The notes beneath the pieces are model-generated. The model was given only the letters and a program-made list of their open reading frames with translations, searched no databases and was not told the origin of the DNA. A DNA stretch of 63,871 nt from Pavona decussata (Eukaryota): assembly GCA_977016875.1 (NCBI GenBank), contig CDRNST010000599.1:1-63871 (forward strand), read 5' to 3'. A program made the position numbers and the translations under genes. Each line of letters opens with the position of its first letter. The stretch's first letter is position 1. Shown piece by piece: positions 368-63,871 of the stretch.

Positions 368-2170
368 ATGGATCCTGGACATTCTTCTAAATTGCAATCT
401 CATGATGCTGAGGTAAGAGACAAAAGAATCGAGAAAAGGGGTCTGGGTAAAAGGGTTGCAGGTCACTCTCTCCTCTCTTTCTAAAAAAAGGGCCCTCCAA
501 GAAAGAAACAGACGACTTTGGAGAAACTTGGTCTAGATGCGGAAAGATTTTATTGTGGACCACTCTCTTCTCTGGGAACCTTTCGAATCCTTTCTAAGAA
601 CGAAATTAGAACCACTCTGGAAGAAGTTAAATGTATTTCTCTTTTTCCGATCACTCTTCACCCAACAGGGAAACATACCACTTTATCCTCTGCACTCAAC
701 AGATCATTTAGTTCAATTCGTAAGGAAGTATAGGGGGTGTATAGCCTAAGTAGTAAAGTTAATAATTTTAAAGGGAAGTGTATTAATAAAAATTAATCAT
801 ACAGCTACAAATTTGGAAGTAAAAGTGCATCATGATCAACGTAACTTTGTTGTTGAACATGTTACAAACGAAATGATGAGGGATGCTGCTACTATCCAGA
901 AGATTGAGAGTTTGATACATCATATTGCTGACATTTGTGCGAAAGCTCAAGTTGACTCGACACAGTCAGGCCATGGTCAGAAGGTTTGTATGTGTGTGTG
1001 TTTCTGTCTGTCTCCACGCTAGCTGCTACATATACATGTACCTTGTTCATAAGTGTCGAGTGAGGAGTTATAACGTTCCTTTTTGGCGTTGAAGACATAC
1101 ATATTGTGTGAGTTTCACTAAATGCATTAGACAGAAGACTCACCAACAGTTCTGGACAAGACTGGAAACGATTATGTCAAGTGCATGCTTTAATACAGCT
1201 CCGAGGGTCTCATACTTTAGTGTTCATTATTATCTTAATCTGTGTTTTTTGTTTAAGGAGGACTTTGACGAACTTCTATGGTCAAGTATTTCTTCAGCAG
1301 TGTTAGGAAGTAATTCTGTCGTGTTTACGCAATGTGAAATTGCTGGTGAAACTCTGCCTCATGGTGATGTAGACGTAATTGCTAGTCTGATTGGTGAGGA
1401 GAGCAGCATTGACTTCCCTACTGCTATTGGTATTGTTCTTAGTGAGAGCAACGCAACTGTTCCAGTTGATGATGCCATTGGTATATCAGCAAAGACACGC
1501 AATTCATTGCGCACAAAGCCACCTAGTAAGTTTAAATAAGGAAGTAAGTTAAGTCCCTTTGTTTATCTACTACAAATTTATTTTCTACAGATCCCCAAGG
1601 TGTAGTAGAATGCCTTTCATTGTCTGAGATACAGCAGGTCAGAGACAAACCTGTTCTCTTTATTTCAGGTATGTACACAAAATTTAATGAAAATCAGATG
1701 GTTTACCATCTGAAGTCTCCAAGATTTTTATTCAGGTTGATTGTTTGAGGACATAATGTTATGCAGGCTCCCGGGAGGCATTCAGACCATTCTTGAGAGT
1801 ACTGGAACTGGATTTAGTTCTCACTACTGCAGAGGCCATTAAATTTTGGAACACCAAAGAAAACAAACCACACTTGACGGGTCTTGTTCTACTTATTGTT
1901 CTAATGTTGGGAGTGTCTTCATCTTCAGGAGTGCCATTACAATTAGCAAATACACTAATACTTGCGGAGCACAAAATTTTGCAGTGGCCAAAGACAATGT
2001 GGAACTCATATTATGAAAGTAGTGTAGAAAAGTACAGTAAAAAAATTACGGCAAAGAGAAAGGGAAAACAACCCTCTGAAGTCCCTGAACGTATCACACA
2101 TTCAGTGTCAGTACCTGTAGCCATTGTTGATGAGAAAACAGTGTATTTAAAACGTTTTGTACCAAAATAA
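368..2170 (+). CDS. Cassette gene copy 1 (variant A): 6 exons, ~400 aa, putative PD-(D/E)xK/REase-fold protein
   Basis: Exons 368-412, 491-719, 805-983, 1258-1525, 1591-1668 and 1767-2170 join through GT-AG introns with consistent phases (0,1,0,1,1) into 1203 nt = 400 aa + stop. Motifs GDVDVIA...GISAK...PQGVVECL align with AKFDLVV...IETK in the paralog at 23.8-25.6 kb. The fold call is inference. Confidence 0.75.
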
Positions 2171-9060: not shown

Positions 9061-10863
9061 TTATTCTGGTACAAAACGTTTTAAATACACTTTTTTCTCC
9101 TTAACAATGGCTAAAGGTACTGTCACTGAATGTGTGATACGTTCAGGGACTTCAGAGGGTTGTTTTCCCTTTCTCTTTGCCGTAATTTTTTTACTGTACT
9201 TTTCTACACTACTTTCATAATATGAGTTCCACATTGTCTTTGGCCACTGCAAAACTTTGTGCTCCGCAAGTATTAGTGTATTTGTTAATTGTAATGGCAC
9301 TCCTGAAGATGAAGACACTCCCAACATTAGAACAATAAGTAGAACAAGACCCGTCAAGTGTGGTTTGTTTTCTTTGGTGTTCCAAAATTTAATGGCCTCT
9401 GCAGTAGTGAGAACTAAATCCAGTTCCAGTACTCTCAAGAATGGTCTGAATGCCTCCCGGGAGCCTGCATAACATTATGTCCTCAAACAATCAACCTGAA
9501 TAAAAATCTTGGAGACTTCAGATGGTAAACCATCTGATTTTCATTAAATTTTGTGTACATACCTGAAATAAAGAGAACAGGTTTGTCTCTGATCTGCTGT
9601 ATCTCAGACAATGAAAGGCATTCTACTACAGCTTGGGGATCTGTAGAAAATAAATTTGTAGTAGATAAACAAAGGGACTTAACTTACTTCCTTATTTAAA
9701 CTTACTAGGTGGCTTTGTGCGCAATGAATTGCGTGTCTTTGCTGATATACCAATGGCATCATCAACTGGAACAGTTTCGTTGCTCTCACTAAGAACAATA
9801 CCAATAGCAGTAGGGAAGTCAATGCTGCTCTCCTCACCAATCCGACTAGCAATTACGTCTACATCACCATGAGGCAGAGTTTCACCAGCAATTTCACATT
9901 GCGTAAACACGACAGAATTACTTCCTAACACTGCTGAAGAAATACTTGACCATAGAAGTTCGTCAAAGTCCTCCTTAAACAAAAAACACAGATTAAGATA
10001 ATAATGAACACTAAAGTATGAGACCCTCGGAGCTGTATTAAAGCATGCACTTGACATAATCGTTTCCAGTCTTGTCCAGAACTGTTGGTGAGTCTTCTGT
10101 CTAATGCATTTAGTGAAACTCACACAATATGTATGTCTTCAACGCCAAAAAGGAACGTTATAACTCCTCACTCGACACTTATGAACAAGGTACATGTATA
10201 TGTAGCAGCTAGCGTGGAGACAGACAGAAACACACACACATACAAACCTTCTGACCATGGCCTGACTGTGTCGAGTCAACTTGAGCTTTCGCACAAATGT
10301 CAGCAATATGATGTATCAAACCCTCAATCTTCAGGATAGTAGCAGCATCCATCGTCATTTCGTTTGTAACATATTCAACAACAAAGTTACGTTGATCATG
10401 ATGCACTTTTACTTCCAAATTTGTAGCTGTATGATTAATTTTTATTAATACACTTCCCTTTAAAATTATTAACTTTACTACTTAGGCTATACACCCCCTA
10501 TACTTCCTTACGAATTGAACTAAATGATCTGTTGAGTGCAGAGGATAAAGTGGTATGTTTCCCTGTTGGGTGAAGAGTGATCGGAAAAAGAGAAGTACAT
10601 ATAACTTCTTCCAGAGTGGTTCTAATTTCGTTCTTAGAAAGGATTCGAAAGGTTCCCAGAGAAGAGAGTGGTCCACAATAAAATCTTTCCGCATCTAGAC
10701 CAAGTTTCTCCAAAGTCGTCTGTTTCTTTCTTGGAGGGCCCTTTTTTTAGAAAGAGAGGAGAGAGTGACCTGCAACCCTTTTACCCAGACCCCTTTTCTC
10801 GATTCTTTTGTCTCTTACCTCAGCATCATGAGATTGCAATTTAGAAGAATGTCCAGGATCCAT
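9061..10863 (-). CDS. Cassette gene copy 2 (variant B2), inverted
   Basis: Position p of copy 1 maps to 11231-p with the same splice sites. Exon 3 reads YVTNEMTMDAATILKIEGL. Confidence 0.75.
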
Positions 10864-17380: not shown

Positions 17381-17628
17381 TTACTGATTGCACCACATAA
17401 ATCGTGGGACCAACTGATGAGTCCTCCCACTAAAAATAATGGACGAAAAGCTCACTGTATCATACAGTGAACTGCTTGCACCACATAAATCGTGGGACCA
17501 GCTGATGAGTCCTCCCACTCTAAAAGTAATGGACGAAAAGTTCACTGTATCATACAGTGAACTTACTGGTTGCACTACATAAATTGTGGGACCAGCTGAT
17601 GAGTCCTCCCACTCTAAAAATAATGGAC
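17381..17628 (+). ncRNA. Tandem hammerhead ribozyme array; middle unit 17492-17570 intact
   Basis: accag-CUGAUGA-gucc-loop-ggac-GAAA-aguucacugua/uca/uacagugaacu-UA-cuggu has the full core, stems I, II and III, and predicted cleavage after A17565. gtggga (17492-17497) is complementary to loop II tcccac (17513-17518). Unit 1 has a damaged cleavage site and unit 3 stops after ggac. Confidence 0.88.
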
Positions 17629-18610
17629 ATTGCTATGATACTCATGCTGTATGATACAGATACACACAGCATTATTGTTTGCTATGATCATAGCAATGAA
17701 CCAACCAATTGATGGGTTCAGATCCCAGTTTGCCACTAGCTTTGATTGCTATGATACTGCATGGGATTACAGGACCATGATACAACTCTATGGGCACAAT
17801 AATATCGTAAAAAATCATTATACGGGGCATTGATATCTGTATCACACAGCATGGGTATTCCATATCATGGCAATAAGTCGTTTATATCATGCTCTTGTAT
17901 CATAGCATTAATTTTTATGAGGCCACATCATAAAAGCATGCCAATTTGCATTTATTGTATTAATCCGTTAATTGGTTAATTGGTTAACACTCTACAGCAT
18001 GAGTAATTATAGCAGTAATGAGTGTCAGCTTTCCTGTATCATAATGCATGAGTATCATAGCCGTAATCCCAATAAAAATCTGTATCACACAGCATGAACA
18101 TCATGGCATGAATCATGGCATCATGCTAGGTATCACAGGAACATGCTACTAAATAATGCACACGAAAACAGTCATTGCACACTACAGAAAGTACACACAC
18201 CTTATGACCTAACCCTAACCCCTAACCACAGATATTGTGGCTCAATTGTCCTAATACTTACTCTATATGTGATACAGATAATACAGATACTCTGCTACTG
18301 ATGCGCTTACATATGCATGGGGCGAACAGTATGGGGACACACCCACAATGACACGCATTGGTATGTGCAAAAGTCACGTGGAATATTAATGAGTTCGCAC
18401 CTCAATTTTAGATCGAGAACTTTTTTGTCCTATCTAGGTTTCTCGCCGTCCGCTCTTTTCCTTGTCTTCAACTAAAGAGTAAGTAGAGATGAAATGCATC
18501 TACGCATTTAATTAAGAGTTAACCACTATAACAAGCGATGTGGCCACAACTTAAATTGGCTCATTATGATTGGAACTAGGTCCGTGCTATTCTATACATA
18601 CTATAGGAAT

Positions 18611-20413
18611 ATGGATCCTGGACATTCTTCTAAATTGCAATCTCATGATGCTGAGGTAAGAGACAAAAGAATCGAGAAAAGGGGTCTGGGTAAAAGGGTT
18701 GCAGGTCACTCTCTCCTCTCTTTCTAAAAAAAGGGCCCTCCAAGAAAGAAACAGACGACTTTGGAGAAACTTGGTCTAGATGCGGAAAGATTTTATTGTG
18801 GACCACTCTCTTCTCTGGGAACCTTTCGAATCCTTTCTAAGAACGAAATTAGAACCACTCTGGAAGAAGTTAAATGTATTTCTCTTTTTCCGATCACTCT
18901 TCACCCAACAGGGAAACATACCACTTTATCCTCTGCACTCAACAGATCATTTAGTTCAATTCGTAAGGAAGTATAGGGGGTGTATAGCCTAAGTAGTAAA
19001 GTTAATAATTTTAAAGGGAAGTGTATTAATAAAAATTAATCATACAGCTACAAATTTGGAAGTAAAAGTGCATCATGATCAACGTAACTTTGTTGTTGAA
19101 CATGTTACAAACGAAATGATGAGGGATGCTGCTACTATCCAGAAGATTGAGAGTTTGATACATCATATTGCTGACATTTGTGCGAAAGCTCAAGTTGACT
19201 CGACACAGTCAGGCCATGGTCAGAAGGTTTGTATGTGTGTGTGTTTCTGTCTGTCTCCACGCTAGCTGCTACATATACATGTACCTTGTTCATAAGTGTC
19301 GAGTGAGGAGTTATAACGTTCCTTTTTGGCGTTGAAGACATACATATTGTGTGAGTTTCACTAAATGCATTAGACAGAAGACTCACCAACAGTTCTGGAC
19401 AAGACTGGAAACGATTATGTCAAGTGCATGCTTTAATACAGCTCCGAGGGTCTCATACTTTAGTGTTCATTATTATCTTAATCTGTGTTTTTTGTTTAAG
19501 GAGGACTTTGACGAACTTCTATGGTCAAGTATTTCTTCAGCAGTGTTAGGAAGTAATTCTGTCGTGTTTACGCAATGTGAAATTGCTGGTGAAACTCTGC
19601 CTCATGGTGATGTAGACGTAATTGCTAGTCTGATTGGTGAGGAGAGCAGCATTGACTTCCCTACTGCTATTGGTATTGTTCTTAGTGAGAGCAACGCAAC
19701 TGTTCCAGTTGATGATGCCATTGGTATATCAGCAAAGACACGCAATTCATTGCGCACAAAGCCACCTAGTAAGTTTAAATAAGGAAGTAAGTTAAGTCCC
19801 TTTGTTTATCTACTACAAATTTATTTTCTACAGATCCCCAAGGTGTAGTAGAATGCCTTTCATTGTCTGAGATACAGCAGGTCAGAGACAAACCTGTTCT
19901 CTTTATTTCAGGTATGTACACAAAATTTAATGAAAATCAGATGGTTTACCATCTGAAGTCTCCAAGATTTTTATTCAGGTTGATTGTTTGAGGACATAAT
20001 GTTATGCAGGCTCCCGGGAGGCATTCAGACCATTCTTGAGAGTACTGGAACTGGATTTAGTTCTCACTACTGCAGAGGCCATTAAATTTTGGAACACCAA
20101 AGAAAACAAACCACACTTGACGGGTCTTGTTCTACTTATTGTTCTAATGTTGGGAGTGTCTTCATCTTCAGGAGTGCCATTACAATTAGCAAATACACTA
20201 ATACTTGCGGAGCACAAAATTTTGCAGTGGCCAAAGACAATGTGGAACTCATATTATGAAAGTAGTGTAGAAAAGTACAGTAAAAAAATTACGGCAAAGA
20301 GAAAGGGAAAACAACCCTCTGAAGTCCCTGAACGTATCACACATTCAGTGTCAGTACCTGTAGCCATTGTTGATGAGAAAACAGTGTATTTAAAACGTTT
20401 TGTACCAAAATAA
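18611..20413 (+). CDS. Cassette gene copy 3 (variant A, apparently identical to copy 1)
   Basis: Offset +18243 from copy 1; all ORF-track peptides are identical. Confidence 0.75.
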
Positions 20414-20688
20414 TCTTGGAAGCTGTATCATATTCCGCTATACACAAATTATTTCTTATACCACTTCCATTGTATAATTAAGATTCACTTTGCTATAGAA
20501 GTTAAGGTTGACTACAATGGATACGTATCACAAGTATACATTATGCTTGACGCCTATTAGTCTAGTTTACTTCTAGTACTTCTTATAAACTTCTAGTGCC
20601 TCTAACAAAATATAGACTACTATAAGAAGCACTGGAAGTTTATTATAAGTACTAGAAGTTGGCATCCTAGACAATAATAAATAATAAT

Positions 20689-20735
20689 AAATAATGGACG
20701 AAAAGCTCACTGTATCATACAGTGAACTTACTGGT
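20689..20735 (+). ncRNA. 3' half hammerhead of cassette copy 3
   Basis: aaataatGGAC-GAAA-stem III-UA-CUGGU with predicted cleavage after A20730; complements the 5' half at 17591-17628. Confidence 0.75.
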
Positions 20736-20994
20736 TGCACCACATAAATCGTGTGATACTGAGTGAGTATAATGGCAATGATGTTCATGCTCTGTCATGA
20801 TACTCACTCTATGTGATAAAGAAATCATACTGTGTGTGTCTCATGTGTCTCATAGTATTGCCTTTACGTCATTTGTTGATAAAGGAGCATGATACCAATG
20901 ACACAGCAATATAATTATTAACAAATTAGATGATTTCAGACAAGATGACAGAGTCAGAAAGTAAGGCACGGGAAGATATTCTGTAGTGTGTAAT

Positions 20995-23095
20995 GACTAG
21001 CTCTGTGCCTTCAGTCTGTGGCTGTCGTGGACCGACAAGCCACATTCACAGATACTTCCACCAGGACAAGTAGCATGAAGATAGCTCTGTGCCTTCAGTC
21101 TGTGGCTGTCATGGACCAACAAGCCACTTTTACACATACTTTCACCGAGATAAGTAGCATGGAGATAGCTCTGTGCCTTCAGTCTGTGGCTATCGTAGAC
21201 CGACAAGCCACATTTACAGATACTTCCACCAGGATAAGTAGCATGAAGATAGCTCTGTACCTTCAGTCTGTGGTTGTCATGGACTGACAAGCCACTTTTA
21301 CAGATACTTCCACTGAGATAAGTAGCATGGAGGTAGCTCTGTGCCTTCAATCTGTGGCTGTCATGGATTGACAAGCCACTTTTACAGATACTTCCACCAC
21401 AATAAGTTGCATGGTGATGACTCTGTAGCTGCAGTCTGTGGCTGTTGTGGATCGTGAAGCCACATTCACAGATACTTCCACCAGGATAAGTAGCATGGAG
21501 ATAGCTCTGTGGCTGCAGTCTGTAACTGTATATACCGACAAGCCACTTACACAGATACTTCCACCAAAATAAGTAGCTTGGAGGTAACTCTGTTCCTTCA
21601 GTCTGTGGCTGTCGTGAACCGACAAGCTACATTCACAGATACTTCCACCAGGATAAGTATCATGGAGATAGCTCTGTACCTTCAGTCTGTGACTGTCGTG
21701 GACTAACAAACCAATTTCACTAGCACTTCCACCACAATAAATTACATGGTGATTGCTCTGTGGCTACAGTCTGTAACTCTATGGACCGACAAGCCACTTA
21801 CAGAGATACTTCCACCAAAATAAGTAGCTTGGAGGTAACTCTGTTCCTTCAGTCTGTGGTTGTCGTGGACCGGTAAGCCACTTTCACAGATACTTTCACA
21901 GATACTTTTTTTGTTAACATGAAACATAAATGGATGACAATATATGAGCAACCAGGAAGATACACGGTATCAATACAGTGTGTCTTTTCGTCCATTATTT
22001 TTAGAGTGGGAGGACTCATCAGCTGGTCCCACTTACGCACGCAACAGATGCTGAGACACACGCGCTGAGACACACACACAAATATAACTTTCACAGATAC
22101 TTCCACCAGAATTAGTAGCTCTGTGCTGCAGTCTGTGGACAGACAAGCCACTTTCACAGATACTTCCACTAGAATAAGTAGCATGGAGGTAAATGTGCCG
22201 TTAGTGTGTAGCTGTCGTGGATCGGCAAGCCACTTTCACAGATACTTCCACCAGAATAAGTAGCATGGAGATACCTCTGTACCTTCAGTCTGTGGTTGTC
22301 ATGGACTGACAAGCCACTTTTACGGACACTTCCACTAGAATAAGTAGCATGAAGGTAGCTCTGTGCCTTCAGTCTGTGGCTGTCATGGACCAACAAGCCA
22401 CTTTTACACATACTTTCACTGAGATAAGTAGCATGGAGATAGCTCTGTGCCTTCAGTCTGTGGCTGTCGTGAACCGACAAGCTACATTCATAGATACTTC
22501 CACCAGGATAAGTAGCATGGAGATAGCTCTGTGCCTTCAGTCTGTGGCTGTCGTGAACCGACAAGCTACATTCACAGATACTTCCACCAGGATAAGTAGC
22601 ATGGAGATAGCTCTGTGCCTTCAGTCTGTGGCTGTCATGGACCAACAAGCCCCTTTTACTAGCACTTCCACCACAATAATTTACACTGTCGTGGACTGAC
22701 AAGCCACTTTCACAAGCACTTCCACCACAATAAGTTGCATGATGTTAGCTCTGTGCCTTCAGTCTGTGACTGTCGTGGACTGACAAGCCACTTTCACAAG
22801 CACTTCCACCACAATAAGTTGCATGGTGATGGCTTTGTGGCTGCAGTCTGTAACTGTATGGACCGACAAGCCACTTACACAGACACTTCCACCAAAATAA
22901 GTAGCTTGGAGGTAACTCTGTTCCTTCAGTCTGTGGTTGTTGTGGACTGGCAAGCCACTTTCACGGATACTTCCACCAGAATAAGTAGCATGGAGATAGC
23001 TCTGTGCCTTCAGTCTGTGGCTGTCGTGGACAGACAAGCCACTTTTACAGATACTTCCACTGAGATAAATGGAAATAGCTCTGTGCCTTTAGTCT
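20995..23095 (-). repeat. 84-bp satellite array, reverse, interrupted by a ~180-bp spacer containing an HHR
   Basis: Reverse units with a unique spacer at ~21906-22085. Confidence 0.93.
21951..22032 (-). ncRNA. Hammerhead ribozyme variant B inside the satellite
   Basis: Reverse complement of 62062-62143. Confidence 0.8.
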
Positions 23096-23813
23096 ATAAT
23101 AGAAGTACATTTATTAGAAGTTGACTAGAAGTGGATTAAGAAGAAAGTAGTACTGGAAATTTCAGGTCCGTAGTCACAATTCAAATTTCAAATGTTGCGA
23201 TTGCGCGTGCGCAATGACTGCCAGCGAGTACTTCGAATAACTTAGTGAGCATGCGCTATGCCTTCCGTGCTACCTCTGGACACGTGCACTGTCGGTTGTC
23301 TCTCAACGCTGGTGACGTCGGTGTCTTCGTTGATAGAGCAGGTCCTAACAAGTGTTGGCACCCTGCCTGTTTCATGTGCTCGGATAATATAGAAGTGGAC
23401 TAGAAGAGGATTAGATGTACTTATTAGATACTCATGTTGTGTCAAGCAAAGATCAATAGTATGATTTTTATTACACTCTTCAGAAACAAACCATTGCCTC
23501 CATTTTAGGTGCTGTTTCTCTCTCAAAGCAGGTTACACTCTCTGCCGGCTGTGAAAAATGGAGTCGTTCCCGTACTACAGAGAGAATTATGGAGCATCTG
23601 ATCGTCACTTTGGGGTGTTTAAATCCAATAACCCGTACGTACGTGGAAGCTTGATAGATTTAAAGGTCGTTAAGTCTGCCTTAGAGAAAGTATCAATATA
23701 TGCTTTAGCACCTATGAGGATTTCATCAAGACTAAGTAAGTTAAACTTGTATGTATTTAAATAGGCTTGTTTTTCAATATTCCCCATTTGTCACTGTTTG
23801 TAATTTTAATCAG

Positions 23814-25565
23814 ATGGCAAGTCATTGTCTGAGTGCTTGACTTTACGTGAAGACCAGGCTAGGTCACCACCATCTGTGAGCAGTGAGAAAATGAGACGAA
23901 GAATTGAACTTGAGGTTGTCAGAGAAAAAAAAAAGTTGGTGCAACTTGGACATATATTTTCACCCTCACTGGATGAATTAGTCCAAAATGAAACGTTTCT
24001 TAATCTTTTGCAATGTCAAATCCTCTCGCTGTGTTCAGTGGCAACAATTCAATCAGAAAAGATCAAGAATGCTGACACAGTTCGTGAAACAGTAAGTTTC
24101 TTGCTGCCTTCTGGCTAGCTAGACCTTCAAAACTAACTACTGCAGATAGCTTCCAAGGGCTTATGTTAAGATATCATTTGATCTTCAAAGTGTAAGACCA
24201 TACTAAATTTGATCAGACCTATGATGCTAATGGTCCGATATCACATTAATTAATAGTCAGATTTCTGCTGACCAGATCTGAAAAGTAATTAAAACTGACC
24301 TTTGCTAGACCTTCCTTTTTTTTGCGCACATGTAATAAAAATGAGTGTCTAGCTTGCCAGACTAAGTCCACTGTAGCTTAGGGGGCTATCTTATAATGTA
24401 TATAATTTCTGGATTCCATGCAGGAGCTCGTGTTTGAGCAGGAGCTGTTTTGTAATATTCTACAAACTGTTCTTGTTGCTCCGTATGTACTTCATTCCCA
24501 ATGCCAAACGGAATGCCAAACACTTCCAACAGCTAAATTCGACTTAGTTGTAACCAGAGAAACAGTTGCTCCGTATGTACTTCATTCCCAATGCCAAACG
24601 GAATGCCAAACACTTCCAACAGCTAAATTCGACTTAGTTGTAACCAGAGAAACAGCATGCGCCATGGAAAATTCCGTGACGGTCACAATTGAAACTAAGA
24701 GTGTTGGGTCTGTAAGTGAAGAGACTCTGGACACAGGGATGACAAACAAGACCGACACTACAATGAATTTGGAGAAACCTAGTATGTTACATAACTAGTA
24801 TGTTACATAATTATAGAACCTTTCATTCCAACAAATTCCAAATTTTCATAGCAGAATTGTCACAGAATGCACTTTGTTGCCACCACTATGATTTTTGATA
24901 TTCGTTGCCATAGTGAGTTGAAAGTATGAATGAGTTTGGCTTCTTTTCCTCCATTTGTTTTATACAGATGTTTCAGTTGTACTGGAGGCACTGATTTTTT
25001 CTGAGTTAAACTGCAACAATGTAGTGAGACTTGTATCAGGTAAGTATCACTACACTAAAAAAACCCGATCATACTGCATGTGGAGGACATGTCCACACAG
25101 AATATACAGTACGTATAATTATTGTATTTTATAATTGCAGGAAGCAGAAGTTTTGTTAGGCCGTTCATCAGAGTTCGTAAACACGACACTCTACTTACAT
25201 TGCCAGCAGTAAAGAAATGGTGGTTGGCGGAAGAATTTCAAATTGAAGGATGTGTAATTCTTTTACTTTTTCTGCAAGCTGGTACAGGCATCTACCCTGG
25301 ATTTGATGAGATTTTTTTAAACGAAGCATGTAGAGCAATAGATTGTTGTTGTGGATGGGGCAAGGCGTACGAACCCATTGAGGTGAAATACCCCAAAACG
25401 TTGAAGCAGACAAAGCCAACAACCAATTCCTCTGCTTTGAGAGGATTAACACTTGATGAAAGTTTAACAGTACGCCATATGTCTAAAGATGAAGCAATGT
25501 CACTGTACTATAGCGAAAGACGTGATGCACCACCTGCTTCCAAAAAGACAAAACCCAGCAAATGA
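23814..25565 (+). CDS. Diverged paralog of the cassette gene, PD-(D/E)xK-like (last four exons; 5' exons at ~23250-23700 unresolved)
   Basis: Exons 23814-24091, 24424-24781, 24968-25039 and 25141-25565 have the same phases as cassette exons 3-6. FEQELFCNI..SQCQ..LPTAKFDLVV..IETK, VVLEALIFSEL..LVSG and SRSFVRPFIRV..DTLLT align with the cassette protein. In-frame 90-bp duplication at 24475-24654. Confidence 0.7.
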
Positions 25566-25828
25566 ATAATTAAAACTTCTGAGATGATGTTATTGCATTT
25601 TACTCTTTGAATTGTCACACTGTATATCAATATTAGACTTCTGTGTATATCAATATTAGAAGTACTACATGTAGATATTTAATTTTTCAATTATTTCTGA
25701 ACCCTAACGATCTGAATGAACATGAGAGAGCTGATGACGATCAGAACACACCAGAGCAGGTACAGAGGGTGTTAATTGTTCACGTGATGTCACGTGACAC
25801 AATTAAGTACGTCAATATGTCATCTGTC

Positions 25829-26120
25829 TTCTAATCAACTTCTAGCACTTCTAATTTACTTGTACTCCATTCGTAGCACTTTCAAACCACCTCTAGTCCA
25901 CTCGTAGTACTTCTATTCTACTTCTAGTAGTTGTAATACTTCTAATCCACTTCTAGCACTTCTAATGTACTTCTAGTCCACTCGTAATACTTTTAATTCA
26001 CTCCAGTCATAGCACTTCTAATGTACTTCTAGTCCACTCGTAATACTTTTAATTCACTCCAGTCATAGCACTTCTAATGTACTTCTAGTCCACTCGTAAT
26101 ACCGATCCAGTCATAGCACT
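25829..26120 (-). repeat. ACTTCTA/TAGAAGT-rich short-period repeat
   Basis: Dense cttctaat/cttctagt motifs, opposite in orientation to the tagaagt tract at ~23098-23160; inverted copy within 36339-37053. Confidence 0.8.
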
Positions 26121-32114: not shown

Positions 32115-32362
32115 TTACTGATTGCACCACATAAATCGTGGGACCAACTGATGAGTCCTCCCACTAAAAATAATGGACGAAAAGCTCACTGTATCATACA
32201 GTGAACTGCTTGCACCACATAAATCGTGGGACCAGCTGATGAGTCCTCCCACTCTAAAAGTAATGGACGAAAAGTTCACTGTATCATACAGTGAACTTAC
32301 TGGTTGCACTACATAAATTGTGGGACCAGCTGATGAGTCCTCCCACTCTAAAAATAATGGAC
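32115..32362 (+). ncRNA. Tandem hammerhead array, second copy; intact unit 32226-32304
   Basis: Same as 17381-17628 at offset +14734; predicted cleavage after A32299. Confidence 0.88.
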
Positions 32363-33344
32363 ATTGCTATGATACTCATGCTGTATGATACAGATACACA
32401 CAGCATTATTGTTTGCTATGATCATAGCAATGAACCAACCAATTGATGGGTTCAGATCCCAGTTTGCCACTAGCTTTGATTGCTATGATACTGCATGGGA
32501 TTACAGGACCATGATACAACTCTATGGGCACAATAATATCGTAAAAAATCATTATACGGGGCATTGATATCTGTATCACACAGCATGGGTATTCCATATC
32601 ATGGCAATAAGTCGTTTATATCATGCTCTTGTATCATAGCATTAATTTTTATGAGGCCACATCATAAAAGCATGCCAATTTGCATTTATTGTATTAATCG
32701 GTTAATTGGTTAATTGGTTAACACTCTACAGCATGAGTAATTATAGCAGTAATGAGTGTCAGCTTTCCTGTATCATAATGCATGAGTATCATAGCCGTAA
32801 TCCCAATAAAAATCTGTATCACACAGCATGAACATCATGGCATGAATCATGGCATCATGCTAGGTATCACAGGAACATGCTACTAAATAATGCACACGAA
32901 AACAGTCATTGCACACTACAGAAAGTACACACACCTTATGACCTAACCCTAACCCCTAACCACAGATATTGTGGCTCAATTGTCCTAATACTTACTCTAT
33001 ATGTGATACAGATAATACAGATACTCTGCTACTGATGCGCTTACATATGCATGGGGCGAACAGTATGGGGACACACCCACAATGACACGCATTGGTATGT
33101 GCAAAAGTCACGTGGAATATTAATGAGTTCGCACCTCAATTTTAGATCGAGAACTTTTTTGTCCTATCTAGGTTTCTCGCCGTCCGCTCTTTTCCTTGTC
33201 TTCAACTAAAGAGTAAGTAGAGATGAAATGCATCTACGCATTTAATTAAGAGTTAACCACTATAACAAGCGATGTGGCCACAACTTAAATTGGCTCATTA
33301 TGATTGGAACTAGGTCCGTGCTATTCTATACATACTATAGGAAT

Positions 33345-35147
33345 ATGGATCCTGGACATTCTTCTAAATTGCAATCTCATGATGCTGAGGTAAGAGACAA
33401 AAGAATCGAGAAAAGGGGTCTGGGTAAAAGGGTTGCAGGTCACTCTCTCCTCTCTTTCTAAAAAAAGGGCCCTCCAAGAAAGAAACAGACGACTTTGGAG
33501 AAACTTGGTCTAGATGCGGAAAGATTTTATTGTGGACCACTCTCTTCTCTGGGAACCTTTCGAATCCTTTCTAAGAACGAAATTAGAACCACTCTGGAAG
33601 AAGTTATATGTACTTCTCTTTTTCCGATCACTCTTCACCCAACAGGGAAACATACCACTTTATCCTCTGCACTCAACAGATCATTTAGTTCAATTCGTAA
33701 GGAAGTATAGGGGGTGTATAGCCTAAGTAGTAAAGTTAATAATTTTAAAGGGAAGTGTATTAATAAAAATTAATCATACAGCTACAAATTTGGAAGTAAA
33801 AGTGCATCATGATCAACGTAACTTTGTTGTTGAACATGTTACAAACGAAATGATGGAGGATGCTGCTACTATCCTGAAGATTGAGGATTTGATACATCAT
33901 ATTGCTGACATTTGTGCGAAAGCTCAAGTTGACTCGACACAGTCAGGCCATGGTCAGAAGGTTTGTATGTGTGTGTGTTTCTGTCTGTCTCCACGCTAGC
34001 TGCTACATATACATGTACCTTGTTCATAAGTGTCGAGTGAGGAGTTATAACGTTCCTTTTTGGCGTTGAAGACATACATATTGTGTGAGTTTCACTAAAT
34101 GCATTAGACAGAAGACTCACCAACAGTTCTGGACAAGACTGGAAACGATTATGTCAAGTGCATGCTTTAATACAGCTCCGAGGGTCTCATACTTTAGTGT
34201 TCATTATTATCTTAATCTGTGTTTTTTGTTTAAGGAGGACTTTGACGAACTTCTATGGTCAAGTATTTCTTCAGCAGTGTTAGGAAGTAATTCTGTCGTG
34301 TTTACGCAATGTGAAATTGCTGGTGAAACTCTGCCTCATGGTGATGTAGACGTAATTGCTAGTCGGATTGGTGAGGAGAGCAGCATTGACTTCCCTACTG
34401 CTATTGGTATTGTTCTTAGTGAGAGCAACGAAACTGTTCCAGTTGATGATGCCATTGGTATATCAGCAAAGACACGCAATTCATTGCGCACAAAGCCACC
34501 TAGTAAGTTTAAATAAGGAAGTAAGTTAAGTCCCTTTGTTTATCTACTACAAATTTATTTTCTACAGATCCCCAAGCTGTAGTAGAATGCCTTTCATTGT
34601 CTGAGATACAGCAGATCAGAGACAAACCTGTTCTCTTTATTTCAGGTATGTACACAAAATTTAATGAAAATCAGATGGTTTACCATCTGAAGTCTCCAAG
34701 ATTTTTATTCAGGTTGATTGTTTGAGGACATAATGTTATGCAGGCTCCCGGGAGGCATTCAGACCATTCTTGAGAGTACTGGAACTGGATTTAGTTCTCA
34801 CTACTGCAGAGGCCATTAAATTTTGGAACACCAAAGAAAACAAACCACACTTGACGGGTCTTGTTCTACTTATTGTTCTAATGTTGGGAGTGTCTTCATC
34901 TTCAGGAGTGCCATTACAATTAACAAATACACTAATACTTGCGGAGCACAAAGTTTTGCAGTGGCCAAAGACAATGTGGAACTCATATTATGAAAGTAGT
35001 GTAGAAAAGTACAGTAAAAAAATTACGGCAAAGAGAAAGGGAAAACAACCCTCTGAAGTCCCTGAACGTATCACACATTCAGTGACAGTACCTTTAGCCA
35101 TTGTTAAGGAGAAAAAAGTGTATTTAAAACGTTTTGTACCAGAATAA
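33345..35147 (+). CDS. Cassette gene copy 4 (variant B1)
   Basis: Offset +32977 from copy 1 with the same splice sites. Exon 3 reads HVTNEMMEDAATILKIEDL. Confidence 0.75.
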
Positions 35148-35422
35148 CCTGGGAAGCTGTATCATATTCCGCTATACACAAATTATTTCTTATACCACTT
35201 CCATTGTATAATTAAGATTCACTTTGCTATAGAAGTTAAGGTTGACTACAATGGATACGTATCACAAGTATACATTATGCTTGACGCCTATTAGTCTAGT
35301 TTACTTCTAGTACTTCTTATAAACTTCTAGTGCCTCTAACAAAATATAGACTACTATAAGAAGCACTGGAAGTTTATTATAAGTACTAGAAGTTGGCATC
35401 CTAGACAATAATAAATAATAAT

Positions 35423-35469
35423 AAATAATGGACGAAAAGCTCACTGTATCATACAGTGAACTTACTGGT
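35423..35469 (+). ncRNA. 3' half hammerhead of cassette copy 4
   Basis: Same as 2446-2492; predicted cleavage after A35464. Confidence 0.75.
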
Positions 35470-35719
35470 TGCACCACATAAATCGTGTGATACTGAGTGA
35501 GTATAATGGCAATGATGTTCATGCTCTGTCATGATACTCACTCTATGTGATAAAGAAATCATACTGTGTGTGTCTCATAGTATTGCCTTTACGTCATTTG
35601 TTGATAAAGGAGCATGATACCAATGACACAGCAATATAATTATTAACAAATTAGATGATTTCAGACAAGATGACAGAGTCAGAAAGTAAGGCACGGGAAG
35701 ATATTCTGTAGTGTGTAAT

Positions 35720-36338
35720 GACTAGCTCTGTGCCTTCAGTCTGTGGCTGTCGTGGACCGACAAGCCACATTCACAGATACTTCCACCAGGACAAGTAGCA
35801 TGAAGATAGCTCTGTGCCTTCAGTCTGTGGCTGTCATGGACCAACAAGCCACTTTTACACATACTTTCACTGAGATAAGTAGCATGGAGATAGCTCTGTG
35901 CCTTCAGTCTGTGGCTATCGTAGACAGACAAGCCACATTTACAGATACTTCCACCAGGATAAGTAGCATGAAGATAGCTCTGTACCTTCAGTCTGTGGTT
36001 GTCATGGACTGACAAGCCACTTTTACAGATACTTCCACTGAGATAAGTAGCATGGAGGTAGCTCTGTGCCTTCAGTCTGTGGCTGTCATGGATTGACAAG
36101 CCACTTTTACAGATACTTTCACCACAATAAGTTGCATGGTGATGACTCTGTGGCTGTTGTGGATCGTGAAGCCACATTCACAGATACTTCCACCAGGATA
36201 AGTAGCATGGAGATAGCTCTGTACCTTCAGTCTGTGACTGTCGTGGACTGACAAGCCACTTTCACAAGCACTTCCACCAAAATAAGTTGCATGGTGATGG
36301 CTCTGTGGCTGCAGTCTGTAACTGTATGTACCGACAAG
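35720..36338 (-). repeat. 84-bp satellite array, reverse
   Basis: Reverse complement of ~7870-8486. Confidence 0.93.
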
Positions 36339-37194
36339 TGCTAGAAGTCGATTAGAAGTAAATTAGAAGTGCTAGAAGTTGATTAGAAGACCGATGACAT
36401 ATTGACGTACTTAATTGTGTCACGTGACATCACGTGAACAATTAACACCCTCTGTACCTGCTCTGGTGTGTTCTGATCGTCATCAGCTCCCTCGTGTTCA
36501 TTCAGATCGACGTCAGGGATTATGGATTAGTATTACCCACTCAAATCACTTCTAATCTACTCACGTGACTTAATGAATTGGGGTACGGGTTAGAGTATCA
36601 GTGAAAGTGGCTGCTTGTCGGTCCATGACAGCAACAGACTGCACTTCTAATCCACTTGTAAAGTTTTAAAAAAAATTCTAAGAGGCAAGATGCTAATGAA
36701 TCTGTTTAACCATACTGCTACTACGTCAAGTGGGATCATCACACGTAAAAGGAGTGCATACGTATATATATGTATAACGATTGCACGTGACTTACCAGCC
36801 ATACCGGGTTTGATTCTTACTCCCTCCATGCCAGACCTATTAGTGCTATGACTGGATTGGTATTACGAGTGGACTAGAAGTACATTAGAAGTGCTATGAC
36901 TGGAGTGAATTAAAAGTATTACGAGTGGACTACAAGTACATTAGAAGTGCTAGAAGTGGATTAGAAGTATTACAACAACTAGAAGTAGAATAGAAGTACT
37001 ACGAGTGGACTAGAGGTGGTTTAAAAGTGCTACGACTGGAGTACAAGTAAATTAAACTTCACTGAAAACTTTAATGCCAAGCAATATCATAGCAATTAAT
37101 GTATCATACAGCATGAATATCACATCAATAAAGGCATCATTATCTGTAAAGAAAGAAATGGTGAGGTTCTACTCTCACTTATACTTTTGTGTTT

Positions 37195-38084: not shown

Positions 38085-38785
38085 ACGAGTGGACTAGAAG
38101 TGGATTAGAAAGGACTAGAAGTGGAGTAAAAGTAATTTAAAAGTGCTAGAAGTATTAGAGCTACTTTGACTGGAATAAAAGTGAATTAGAAGTGCTAAGT
38201 GTGGACTAGAAGTGGATTAAAAGTGCCACGAGTGGACTAGAAGTGGATTAGATATACTATGAGAAATAGAAGTAATAATATGTGCTAGAAGAGGATAAGT
38301 TGACTAGAAGTTGATTAGAGGTACTAGAAGTAGACTAGGACTCAAGTGGACTAGAAGTTGATAAGAGGTACTAGAAGTTGAATAAATATATTGGATAAGT
38401 GGACTATAGCCCACTATTTTCTCATAGTATATCTAATCCACTTTTAGCTAACTTCTAGTTCCACTAATCCACTTGTAGCACTTCTAATCTACTTCTAATA
38501 ATATTATTATTATTACTTCTATTTCTCATAGTATATCTAATCCACTTTTAGCTACTAGTTCCACTAATCCACTTGTAGTCCACTTCTAGTCTACTTCTAG
38601 TACTTCTAATCCACTTCTAGTTCACTTCTAATCCCTCTAATCCTATTCTAGTCAACTACTAGTCCACTTCTAGTACCCTCTTATCCTCTTCTAGTCTATT
38701 CAACCTCTAATCCACTTCTAGTCCACTTCTAGTCTACTACATTTCTAATCAACTTCTAGTCCACTTCTGGTACCTCTACTAAACT
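38085..38785. repeat. Fold-back of TAGAAGT/ACTTCTA short repeats
   Basis: tagaagt units to ~38407, then acttcta units; gtggattagatatactatgagaaa (~38242) is reverse-complemented at ~38418. Confidence 0.8.
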
Positions 38786-41642: not shown

Positions 41643-42656
41643 GTGAATACCAGGACACCAATTAGACTGCAGATTTATGAGGAGGCTCTACATCCACCAC
41701 TGAGGGATCAGTATGATGTTTGTGATTTGTGTGAGAAACTAGAGCCCCCTATTAACTCAGCAGGATCATATCATATCGTTTTAGGCCGACCCTCAGTGTA
41801 TATGTACACGTTTACAAAGACTAAACCGGCAAGCCAAGCAAAACTGAGTGACTTTTTAGGAAAACATCTCTCTCTTACGAGTGACGAGATTTTGCCGCCA
41901 AGTCAAGCAGTCACACGGATAAGGTTCAACCTCAAGGCATTCCGTCTCTACGACAAAGATTATGTAGTAGGTTTGCTTAAATGTTGGAAACAACTAACTG
42001 ACCTGCTAGAGAAAAAAGAACCCCCACCTCCTCCATTAGTGGCTGAAATGAACCATTATGCTCGTGAATTGGAAATTTTCACTGGAGAAGAACAAGTAAA
42101 CGAACAGCAAGAGGTTGCGATAAGTGCAAAGTTTGCCAACCTTTTGCAGACATCAATATTCCCAAAAAATGAGTTTAAAGTTAACTCCTTTTCTAAAGAG
42201 ACGCCCCTTAAAATATGTAGATACGCTATGTCCCATCAGGATATTACAATATATAACATAAAGAAATATATCCAGAATGGATCTGCTAGAGCTGCTGTTC
42301 TGGTCTCACCTGATGGTGATGAAGAAATGGAAACAGATGAAACTGAGGATGAATTCACTATTACAGGAGGTACATTAGAGTCTAAGCTTGCACTGCCGAC
42401 AGAACACAAGGATTTGGGGCAATTAGTGGCAGAAATGGAGAAATTGGGTGCTGACTTGTGTGTAAAAGGTATAAAGGCTGGGAATGTACTTATACAGAAG
42501 ATTATTATCTTTGGAGTGTTGCTTAACATAGAAGGAGGTGTAGCAAAACCTGCATCCTTAGAAATTTGCTTCAATGAGGGAGCTACACTAAAAGTAGGTC
42601 TTGATTACATTGACATTAGTGAGTGCTTGTATAGAGTACGTAATAAACTCAGTTAG
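41643..42656 (+). CDS. Intronless ORF, putative Crinkler-type PD-(D/E)xK restriction-endonuclease-fold protein
   Basis: 337-codon ORF with E-helix (QQEVAIS), SHQDITIY, LESK, GQLVAEM and IIFGVLL in the order typical of CR-REase domains. True start uncertain (possible splice acceptor at ~41626). Confidence 0.65.
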   Translation: MNTRTPIRLQIYEEALHPPLRDQYDVCDLCEKLEPPINSAGSYHIVLGRPSVYMYTFTKTKPASQAKLSDFLGKHLSLTSDEILPPSQAVTRIRFNLKAFRLYDKDYVVGLLKCWKQLTDLLEKKEPPPPPLVAEMNHYARELEIFTGEEQVNEQQEVAISAKFANLLQTSIFPKNEFKVNSFSKETPLKICRYAMSHQDITIYNIKKYIQNGSARAAVLVSPDGDEEMETDETEDEFTITGGTLESKLALPTEHKDLGQLVAEMEKLGADLCVKGIKAGNVLIQKIIIFGVLLNIEGGVAKPASLEICFNEGATLKVGLDYIDISECLYRVRNKLS

Positions 42657-63636: not shown

Positions 63637-63871
63637 TTATTCTGGTACTAAACGTTTTAAATACGCTGTTTTCTCCTTAACAATGGCTATAGGTACTGTC
63701 ACTGAATGTGTGATACGTTCAGGGACTTCAGAGGGTTGTTTTCCCTTTCTCTTTGCCGTAATTTTTTTACTGTACTTTTCTACACTACTTTCATAATATG
63801 AGTTCCACATTGTCTTTGGCCACTGCAAAACTTTGTGCTCCGCAAGTATTAGTCTATTTGTTAATTGTAAT
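63637..63871 (-). CDS. Cassette gene copy 5 (variant C), end of last exon, cut by the window edge
   Basis: ...LTNRLILAEHKVLQWPK...VPIAIVKEKTAYLKRLVPE*. Confidence 0.75.
   Translation of the reverse strand, partial: LQLTNRLILAEHKVLQWPKTMWNSYYESSVEKYSKKITAKRKGKQPSEVPERITHSVTVPIAIVKEKTAYLKRLVPE

Follow-up and report, generated by a model that had tools for sequence, protein, structure and literature searches.

Contig CDRNST010000599.1 of the coral Pavona decussata comprises 63,871 bases without a single N, belongs to a 602-Mb assembly, and was analysed here over its full length (hereafter, the window). Two of its genes are the subject of this work, namely a gene on the forward strand at 23814-25565, referred to as the target gene, and the gene carried by an amplified cassette of the same contig, referred to as the cassette gene. 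The account that we hold to have slightly better than an even chance is a joint one: the target gene is a real, single-copy, intron-bearing paralog of the cassette gene; both belong to an unnamed protein family, whose fold is most likely derived from that of a nuclease; both are in the same state at the motif positions of this family; and both are under diversifying selection. The two genes are thus equivalent in state, and the idea that one is active and the other inactivated fails once the proteins are aligned. What most deserves to be followed up is that, in a lineage-restricted and locally amplified family with a nuclease-like motif layout, divergence consists almost purely of amino-acid changes.

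The target gene is present in a single copy in the 602-Mb genome. Its intact four-exon frame of 351 codons lies on the forward strand inside 23814-25565 (Table 1), all introns are of the GT-AG type, and the intron phases are 0, 1 and 1. The canonical splice sites and the frame that stays open across four exons bear out the first-pass annotation, made from the sequence by itself, in placing a gene here. An AG acceptor immediately precedes position 23814, and the first in-frame ATG is at 23891. Exon 1 encodes the string ATIQ, which is common, by eye, to the cassette protein and to P0036, a relative described below. Within exon 2, 90 bp are perfectly duplicated in tandem, so that 30 residues are repeated, including the AKFD segment with the conserved Asp. 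The helix encoded by exon 3 is conserved in the relatives P0027, P0039 and P0005, and exon 4 is the most conserved part of the family, with the pattern RPFIRV..KHD..LLT..W..GCVILLLFLQAG..YP..CGW..Y..VKYPK. The gene model is based on sequence and homology only. A hypothetical coding exon further upstream (23558-23735) would splice onto the acceptor preceding 23814 and read in frame into exon 1, and its similarity to the upstream region of the cassette gene is not significant (E 0.09). A similarly phased candidate, devoid of an ATG, is seen upstream of the cassette gene at 18761-18962. Three differences between target alleles fall within the 23558-23735 extension, and all of them would change amino acids.

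The first-pass annotation described the target gene as a hidden paralog of the cassette gene that shares its exon phases despite little similarity at the DNA level, and each part of this description stands. Local blastp between the spliced models gives an E-value of 3e-13, with 26% identity over 144 aa, and both proteins align over their whole cores to P0036 (E 4e-14 and 4e-25), with which they are collinear from the end of exon 1 through exon 4. All three introns occupy the same sites and have the same phases (0, 1, 1) in the two genes, and the codons that they split are identical: A/AT (Asn) at the junction of exons 2 and 3, and G/Gx (Gly) at the junction of exons 3 and 4. Exon 2 measures 268 nt in the cassette gene and, when the duplication is subtracted, 358 - 90 = 268 nt in the target gene, while exon 3 measures 72 nt in the target and 78 nt in the cassette gene. 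DNA similarity between the two genes is close to nil, the sole weak match being located in exon 3 (59% identity, E 0.09). Altogether, the alignments and the intron positions support the view that the target gene is a true, old and diverged DNA-level duplicate of the amplified cassette gene. Cassette copy C and the target gene share a strand, with about 3.5 kb between them, and five cassette copies are found for one target copy.

Relatives were sought by searching an exon-4 profile against 1.84 billion representatives, with a cut-off of E <= 0.001. The profile gave 37 matches, two of which are spurious repeat proteins, and it recovers both the target and the cassette gene. Most of the matches are exon-sized open reading frames (ORFs) on ENA or Logan contigs, and they sort into target-like, cassette-like and P0036-like groups. 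P0036 (428 aa, NCBI) is the sole full-length spliced relative found. Within the coral's own genome, the family was found on this contig alone. A word search with target exon 4, the whole of P0036 or P0036 residues 175-428 returned only P0036 itself, the method being limited by low-complexity words and its length window, and scans of metagenomes and viruses with the sub-family alignments gave no matches. In P0006 and P0015, which come from other assemblies, an exon-3-like and an exon-4-like part follow each other in one open frame with nothing between them. Intron 3 thus appears not to be universal, being either absent in some relatives or missing from these two ORFs because they derive from transcripts. 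At the helix position, P0006 appears by eye to have E and P0015 to have Q.

The alignments place both genes of the window in a small, unnamed protein family, which has no Pfam model and no solved relative. Its signature consists of a buried Asp segment (G-x-h-D-h-h), a G-h-x-x-K-T strand and a helix with Q/E-x-x-x-F/L. These elements are followed by a C-terminal module (RPF-R-K..D..LLTT..W..G-LLL..GW..Y..KY) and by basic tails that resemble nuclear-localisation signals.

The proposal that the target keeps a canonical D...ExK while the cassette gene has D...SAK holds as far as the strings themselves are concerned: AKFD and IETK are present in the target, and D...ISAK is present in the cassette protein. 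It does not hold as a comparison of equivalent sites. BLAST and three MAFFT modes all equate cassette GISAKT with target GMTNKT and with P0036 GIEAKT. The Lys codons of MTNK (24748-24750) and of ISAK (19735-19737) both begin 11 codons before the end of exon 2, and the conserved Asp, kept in all three lineages, lies 38 or 39 codons from the start of that exon. The IETK string of the target lies 17 residues upstream of the homologous lysine site, in a column where P0036 has IDGE and the cassette protein has LSES. Among target-like relatives with sequence covering this region, the nearest is P0027, whose ORF begins within exon 2; by eye, it has VNGK at this position and M-T-N at the MTNK site. 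The contrast between IETK and ISAK therefore arose because non-homologous positions were compared, and the target IETK is best taken as a lineage-specific coincidence on the preceding strand.

At the homologous site, the residue before x-K-T is T in the target, S in the cassette protein and E in P0036, so that both genes of the window are without the acid. The next helix has Glu in the target (VLEALIF) and in the cassette protein (VVECLSL), and Gln in P0036 (AVQACVF). A second acidic residue able to complete the site is exactly what the first-pass annotation had set against its own pairing of an active with an inactive gene, and this helix Glu is found in both genes. Both are therefore in the same state rather than one active and one inactive. 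An active/inactive pair, derived as it was from misaligned motifs, is not supported by the aligned sequences. This layout has a precedent in Cfr10I, where the acid has migrated to the second core helix and left the third strand; the resulting PD-XXK-E motif is on record as a variant within the PD-(D/E)xK superfamily (PMC3424549).

Divergence within the family was examined in the cassette gene by comparing variants C (17400-21000) and D (32134-35725). Between them there are 22 substitutions and a single 9-nt indel. Of the substitutions, 17 fall in 861 coding bases and five in 2,740 non-coding bases (Fisher p 1.8e-7), and all of the coding substitutions are nonsynonymous, the chance of finding no synonymous change among 17 being 0.012. 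The ratio of divergence at nonsynonymous sites to that of non-coding DNA is about 14. The partial copy E (63640-63871, minus strand) differs from C by 10 nonsynonymous and no synonymous changes in 231 coding bases, with 12 mismatches in the 262-nt alignment of coding plus 3' sequence and one in the 336 nt further downstream, the downstream DNA being by far the better conserved. One codon of the cassette variants exists in three states (V, L and I), and the amino-acid changes are concentrated at the two ends of the protein, within its first 13 and last 20 residues. The cassette gene had been called fast-evolving, and these counts support it; the same pattern extends to the alleles of the target gene, which were drawn from contigs of four runs belonging to one study and two samples. 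These alleles show nine coding differences in eight codons, all nine nonsynonymous, and one difference in 619 intron bases. Changes restricted almost entirely to amino-acid-changing sites point to diversifying selection on both genes and to a role in recognition or conflict.

The target gene is also polymorphic in structure. In run X4, one contig passes directly from 24474 to 24565, a gap of exactly 90 nt, showing that the duplication is not fixed, and a 59-nt contig of run X1 spans the junction between its two copies. The X4 allele that is free of the duplication also has a 28-nt deletion (24763-24790), which removes the exon-2 donor. A 16-nt tandem repeat would provide this allele with a second donor 16 nt downstream, and the reading frame would then be kept. 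Runs X2-X4 contain a contig, at about one-half to two-thirds of the depth seen locally, in which CTA stands in place of 77 nt (25439-25515). By reading, this allele encodes F and then a stop after ...NSSA, with the loss of the last 42 residues. The assembled target allele may itself be impaired, since the very recent duplication repeats the strand pair that bears the conserved Asp.

As to the fold, nucleases of the RecB/AddB/Cas4/YqaJ type share motifs II (GxhDhh), III (hhEhKT) and IV (QhxxY). P0036 has the strings G-x-h-D-h-h, h-G-h-E-h-K-T and Q-x-x-x-F, in an order and with an approximate spacing like those of motifs II to IV. Its layout, D...E-A-K-T...Q-x-x-x-F, would correspond to a PD-(D/E)xK domain of the RecB/Cas4 type, and from this we infer that the family most likely has a nuclease-derived fold. 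The match is incomplete in several respects. Asp on strand 2 together with (D/E)-x-K on strand 3, the hallmark of PD-(D/E)xK enzymes, is seen at the family site as E-A-K in P0036 and is not seen there in the genes of the window. Motif IV in its strict form is absent as well, P0036 having Q-x-x-x-F and the window genes E-x-x-x-F/L, and inspection by eye revealed no Cys cluster at the equivalent position of the target, the cassette protein or P0036.

The AlphaFold2 model of target exon 4 (31 alignment rows) reaches a predicted local distance difference test (pLDDT) score of 80.4 and a predicted template-modelling (pTM) score of 0.46, and contains four or five strands followed by helices, corresponding to only part of a domain; Foldseek and VIA-align found no structural neighbour for it. 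Among named ESM Atlas clusters, the closest are PDDEXK_12 (0.86, 0.85 and 0.85) and HSDR_N (0.83), both of which we take to be members of the PD-(D/E)xK clan. The PF20516 model gave no match in the coral genome, and the control genomes were silent as well, so that this blank carries no weight. Taken on its own, a nuclease-derived fold stands at roughly even chances, and assignment to a PD-(D/E)xK family is a reasonable but unproven lead.

Altogether, these findings lead to a model in which the two genes would descend from a nuclease. Both have kept the Asp and the Lys-Thr, have the acid before the Lys replaced, and carry a Glu in the following helix. Either both would use the relocated acid, as Cfr10I does in its PD-XXK-E arrangement, or both would be non-catalytic binders. 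Their role would be one of recognition or conflict inside the nucleus, directed at nucleic acid or at a partner that itself changes fast. A bolder version, in which an animal-specific nuclease-derived family has moved its catalytic acid from strand to helix in some lineages, with E-x-K and the helix Gln retained in a relative, and serves as a satellite-borne, locally amplified nuclear system of recognition or conflict under strong diversifying selection, is in our view improbable. Such a system might, for example, discriminate self from non-self DNA, defend against mobile elements, or act as a selfish element of the toxin type.

Several results weigh against the joint account given at the outset. 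Pfam, NCBIfam, PHROGs and PADLOC returned no family match, and neither did the PDB sequences. The top PDB profile hit was S-adenosylmethionine (SAM) synthetase at E 0.6, and SAM synthetase was rejected as a chance match, the three hits (E 0.6-1.9) being mutually homologous and none of them significant. Alignment of the local family alignment by hhalign with 30 Cas4 and 28 AddB-type domains from bacterial genomes gave a probability of 0.2%, in a test of low power whose Cas4-AddB positive control reached only 10%. The AlphaFold2 model of P0036 (A8, clean 10-row alignment) has a mean pLDDT of 40.6, with the N-terminal half below 50. The ESM scores of the PDDEXK_12 and HSDR_N leads are all below 0.9, a range that the tool itself rates as leads only and that shuffled sequences reach a third of the time. 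The acid of the motif is seen in one relative only, P0036. At the level of the gene, none of the listed runs is both recorded as RNA and positive for the target stretch, 13 runs guessed to be RNA and bearing the same species label contain none of the words of the target stretch, and the four runs that hold this stretch show no intron-skipping joints. The selection signal of the target taken alone is not significant (p ~0.1), and the allele with the truncated tail also fits decay.

Much of this would be expected if the same rapidly evolving family had a fold other than that of a nuclease, the D, the K-T and the E being coincidental and the proteins being lineage-specific nuclear binding or recognition factors. 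The blank searches, the hhalign result, the chance hit to SAM synthetase and the behaviour of shuffled sequences all speak for this alternative, which we regard as unlikely though deserving serious weight. Against it, every named ESM neighbour belongs to the same clan, P0036 has strings resembling motifs II, III and IV in the right order and with the right spacing, the exon-4 model covers only part of a domain, and it is known that sequence methods miss PD-(D/E)xK families (PMC3424549).

The other two explanations concern the genes rather than the fold. Both genes could be decaying duplicates in a repeat-rich, recombining contig, with the changes, the duplication and the truncation reflecting relaxed constraint. 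The runs checked gave no RNA evidence, 30 residues are duplicated inside the core segment, one allele has the 77-to-3-nt replacement with its early stop, and the only contig that bears the family is unplaced, 64 kb long and full of satellite DNA, all of which would suit decay. However, neutral drift would leave about a quarter of the coding changes synonymous and the density of changes equal in introns, while no synonymous change is observed among 17 (plus 10, plus 9), with an 11-fold excess in coding DNA. In addition, all copies keep open frames and splice sites, and even the allele that carries the 28-nt deletion would stay in frame if the second copy of the 16-nt repeat supplies the donor. 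Decay is therefore a doubtful explanation, to which we give little credence. Least probable is the original proposal of a catalytically intact target (D...E-T-K) facing an inactivated cassette partner (D...S-A-K) that would act as decoy, antidote or binder. In its favour, the strings exist, the genes are close together on one strand, the cassette gene evolves fast, and the 20 residues between D and ExK in the target are a typical spacing for the PD-(D/E)xK superfamily. However, IETK is neither homologous to ISAK nor conserved, the target too evolves by amino-acid changes, and the helix Glu is found in both genes. A toxin-antidote or active/decoy arrangement would, moreover, consist of two linked genes in different states, one of which neutralises the other, while these two are in the same state and, at five copies to one, do not pair one-to-one.

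Table 1. Positions of the target gene, the cassette gene and surrounding sequence elements in the window.
Feature	Position	Strand	Remarks
Target, possible upstream coding exon (hypothetical)	23558-23735	+	ATG at 23558; GTAAGT donor at 23736; phase 1
Target exon 1	23891-24091	+	Coding from first in-frame ATG; ends in phase 0 at GTAAGT donor; exon start may be 23814
Target exon 2	24424-24781	+	358 nt; ends in phase 1, donor GTATGT
Target exon-2 motifs	AKFD 24532-24543 and 24622-24633; IETK 24688-24699; MTNK 24739-24750	+	
Perfect 90-bp in-frame tandem duplication	24475-24564 and 24565-24654	+	Tandem Repeats Finder (TRF): period 90, 2.0 copies, 100% matches
Target exon 3	24968-25039	+	72 nt, phase 1 to 1; encodes helix VLEALIFSE (Glu193 within 24982-24999) and next strand
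Target exon 4	25141-25565	+	Stop codon 25563-25565; basic tail at end
ATTAAA, possible polyadenylation signal	25569-25574	+	Four bases past the stop; read from sequence
Cassette gene, copy C	19116-19226, 19501-19768, 19834-19911, 20010-20413 (exons)	+	286 aa; phases 0, 1, 1
Cassette copy C motifs	DVDV 19609-19620; ISAK 19726-19737; helix VECLSL 19848-19865	+	
Exon-4 matches of other cassette copies	1769-2167 (+), 9064-9462 (-), 34746-35144 (+), 63640-63870 (-)		Last one partial
ACTTCTAGTCCACT motif copy	23394-23407	-	Upstream of target gene; another minus-strand copy at 23119
ACTTCTAGTCCACT array	25889-26094	+	Downstream of target gene
Further ACTTCTAGTCCACT arrays	36346-37017; 38088-38765		Flanking region of PCLAF-like gene
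Array related to ACTTCTAGTCCACT	20561-20661		After cassette gene

The contig is made up predominantly of an 84-bp satellite and of cassettes of 2.8-3.6 kb (four copies plus one partial), and the target gene is located within a unique island of about 2.5 kb with satellite arrays on both sides. The motif ACTTCTAGTCCACT has 36 matches in the window, where 0.9 would be expected by chance. Its minus-strand copy at 23394 and its plus-strand array at 25889-26094 bracket the gene unit of about 2.5 kb in inverted orientation, and the motif may delimit captured gene units at points of recombination or insertion. Contigs from three runs diverge at 23515-23544 and at 25708 into sequence unlike the window, which indicates that the gene unit, about 2.2 kb long, is flanked differently in some other haplotype or copy. 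A short ORF at 23245-23400 (plus strand), a little way upstream of the target gene, shows a weak LIM-domain match (E 0.0033, below the Pfam cut-off); it sits between the two minus-strand ACTTCTAGTCCACT copies and resembles a stray exon fragment. Further along the contig, the ORF at 41643-42656 (plus strand) encodes 337 aa in a single exon. This ORF had been flagged as a restriction endonuclease of the Crinkler type; Pfam gives no match for it, and it shows no resemblance to either the target or the cassette protein.

Should the nuclease-like reading be true, the family would offer a case, rare among animals, of an active-site residue that has migrated within the PD-(D/E)xK superfamily, and a concrete candidate for a coral conflict system. 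Among known systems, RecB/AddB/Cas4/YqaJ-type nucleases resemble P0036 through its G-T-L-D-L-V ... V-G-I-E-A-K-T ... Q-A-C-V-F, which follows the same order. Unlike AddB and Cas4, the family has no apparent iron-sulphur (Fe-S) cysteine cluster and, as reported above, is not linked to them by hhalign, while in the window genes the acid of motif III is missing and the Gln of motif IV is replaced by Glu. The fungal predicted PD-(D/E)xK proteins of Pfam PF20516 (PDDEXK_12) are nearest by language-model features and similar in size (about 180-245 aa), yet the scores stay under the threshold noted earlier and hmmscan gives no match. With PD-(D/E)xK restriction endonucleases of the Cfr10I/Bse634I/NgoMIV type (PD-XXK-E), the window genes share the motif order, as D...T-N-K...E in the target and D...S-A-K...E in the cassette protein (PMC3424549). 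In contrast to these enzymes, the window genes are eukaryotic and intron-bearing, have an extra C-terminal module and basic tails, and show a longer Asp-Lys spacing of about 35-40 residues with an inserted hairpin; the likeness is one of motif order, with the fold predicted at most and no detectable sequence or profile similarity. Finally, by evolutionary pattern only, the family is comparable to the fast-evolving conflict genes of animals (toxin-antidote, immune and allorecognition genes): like them, it is lineage-restricted and locally amplified, and its almost purely amino-acid-changing divergence is typical of arms-race genes involved in immunity, selfish elements and recognition.

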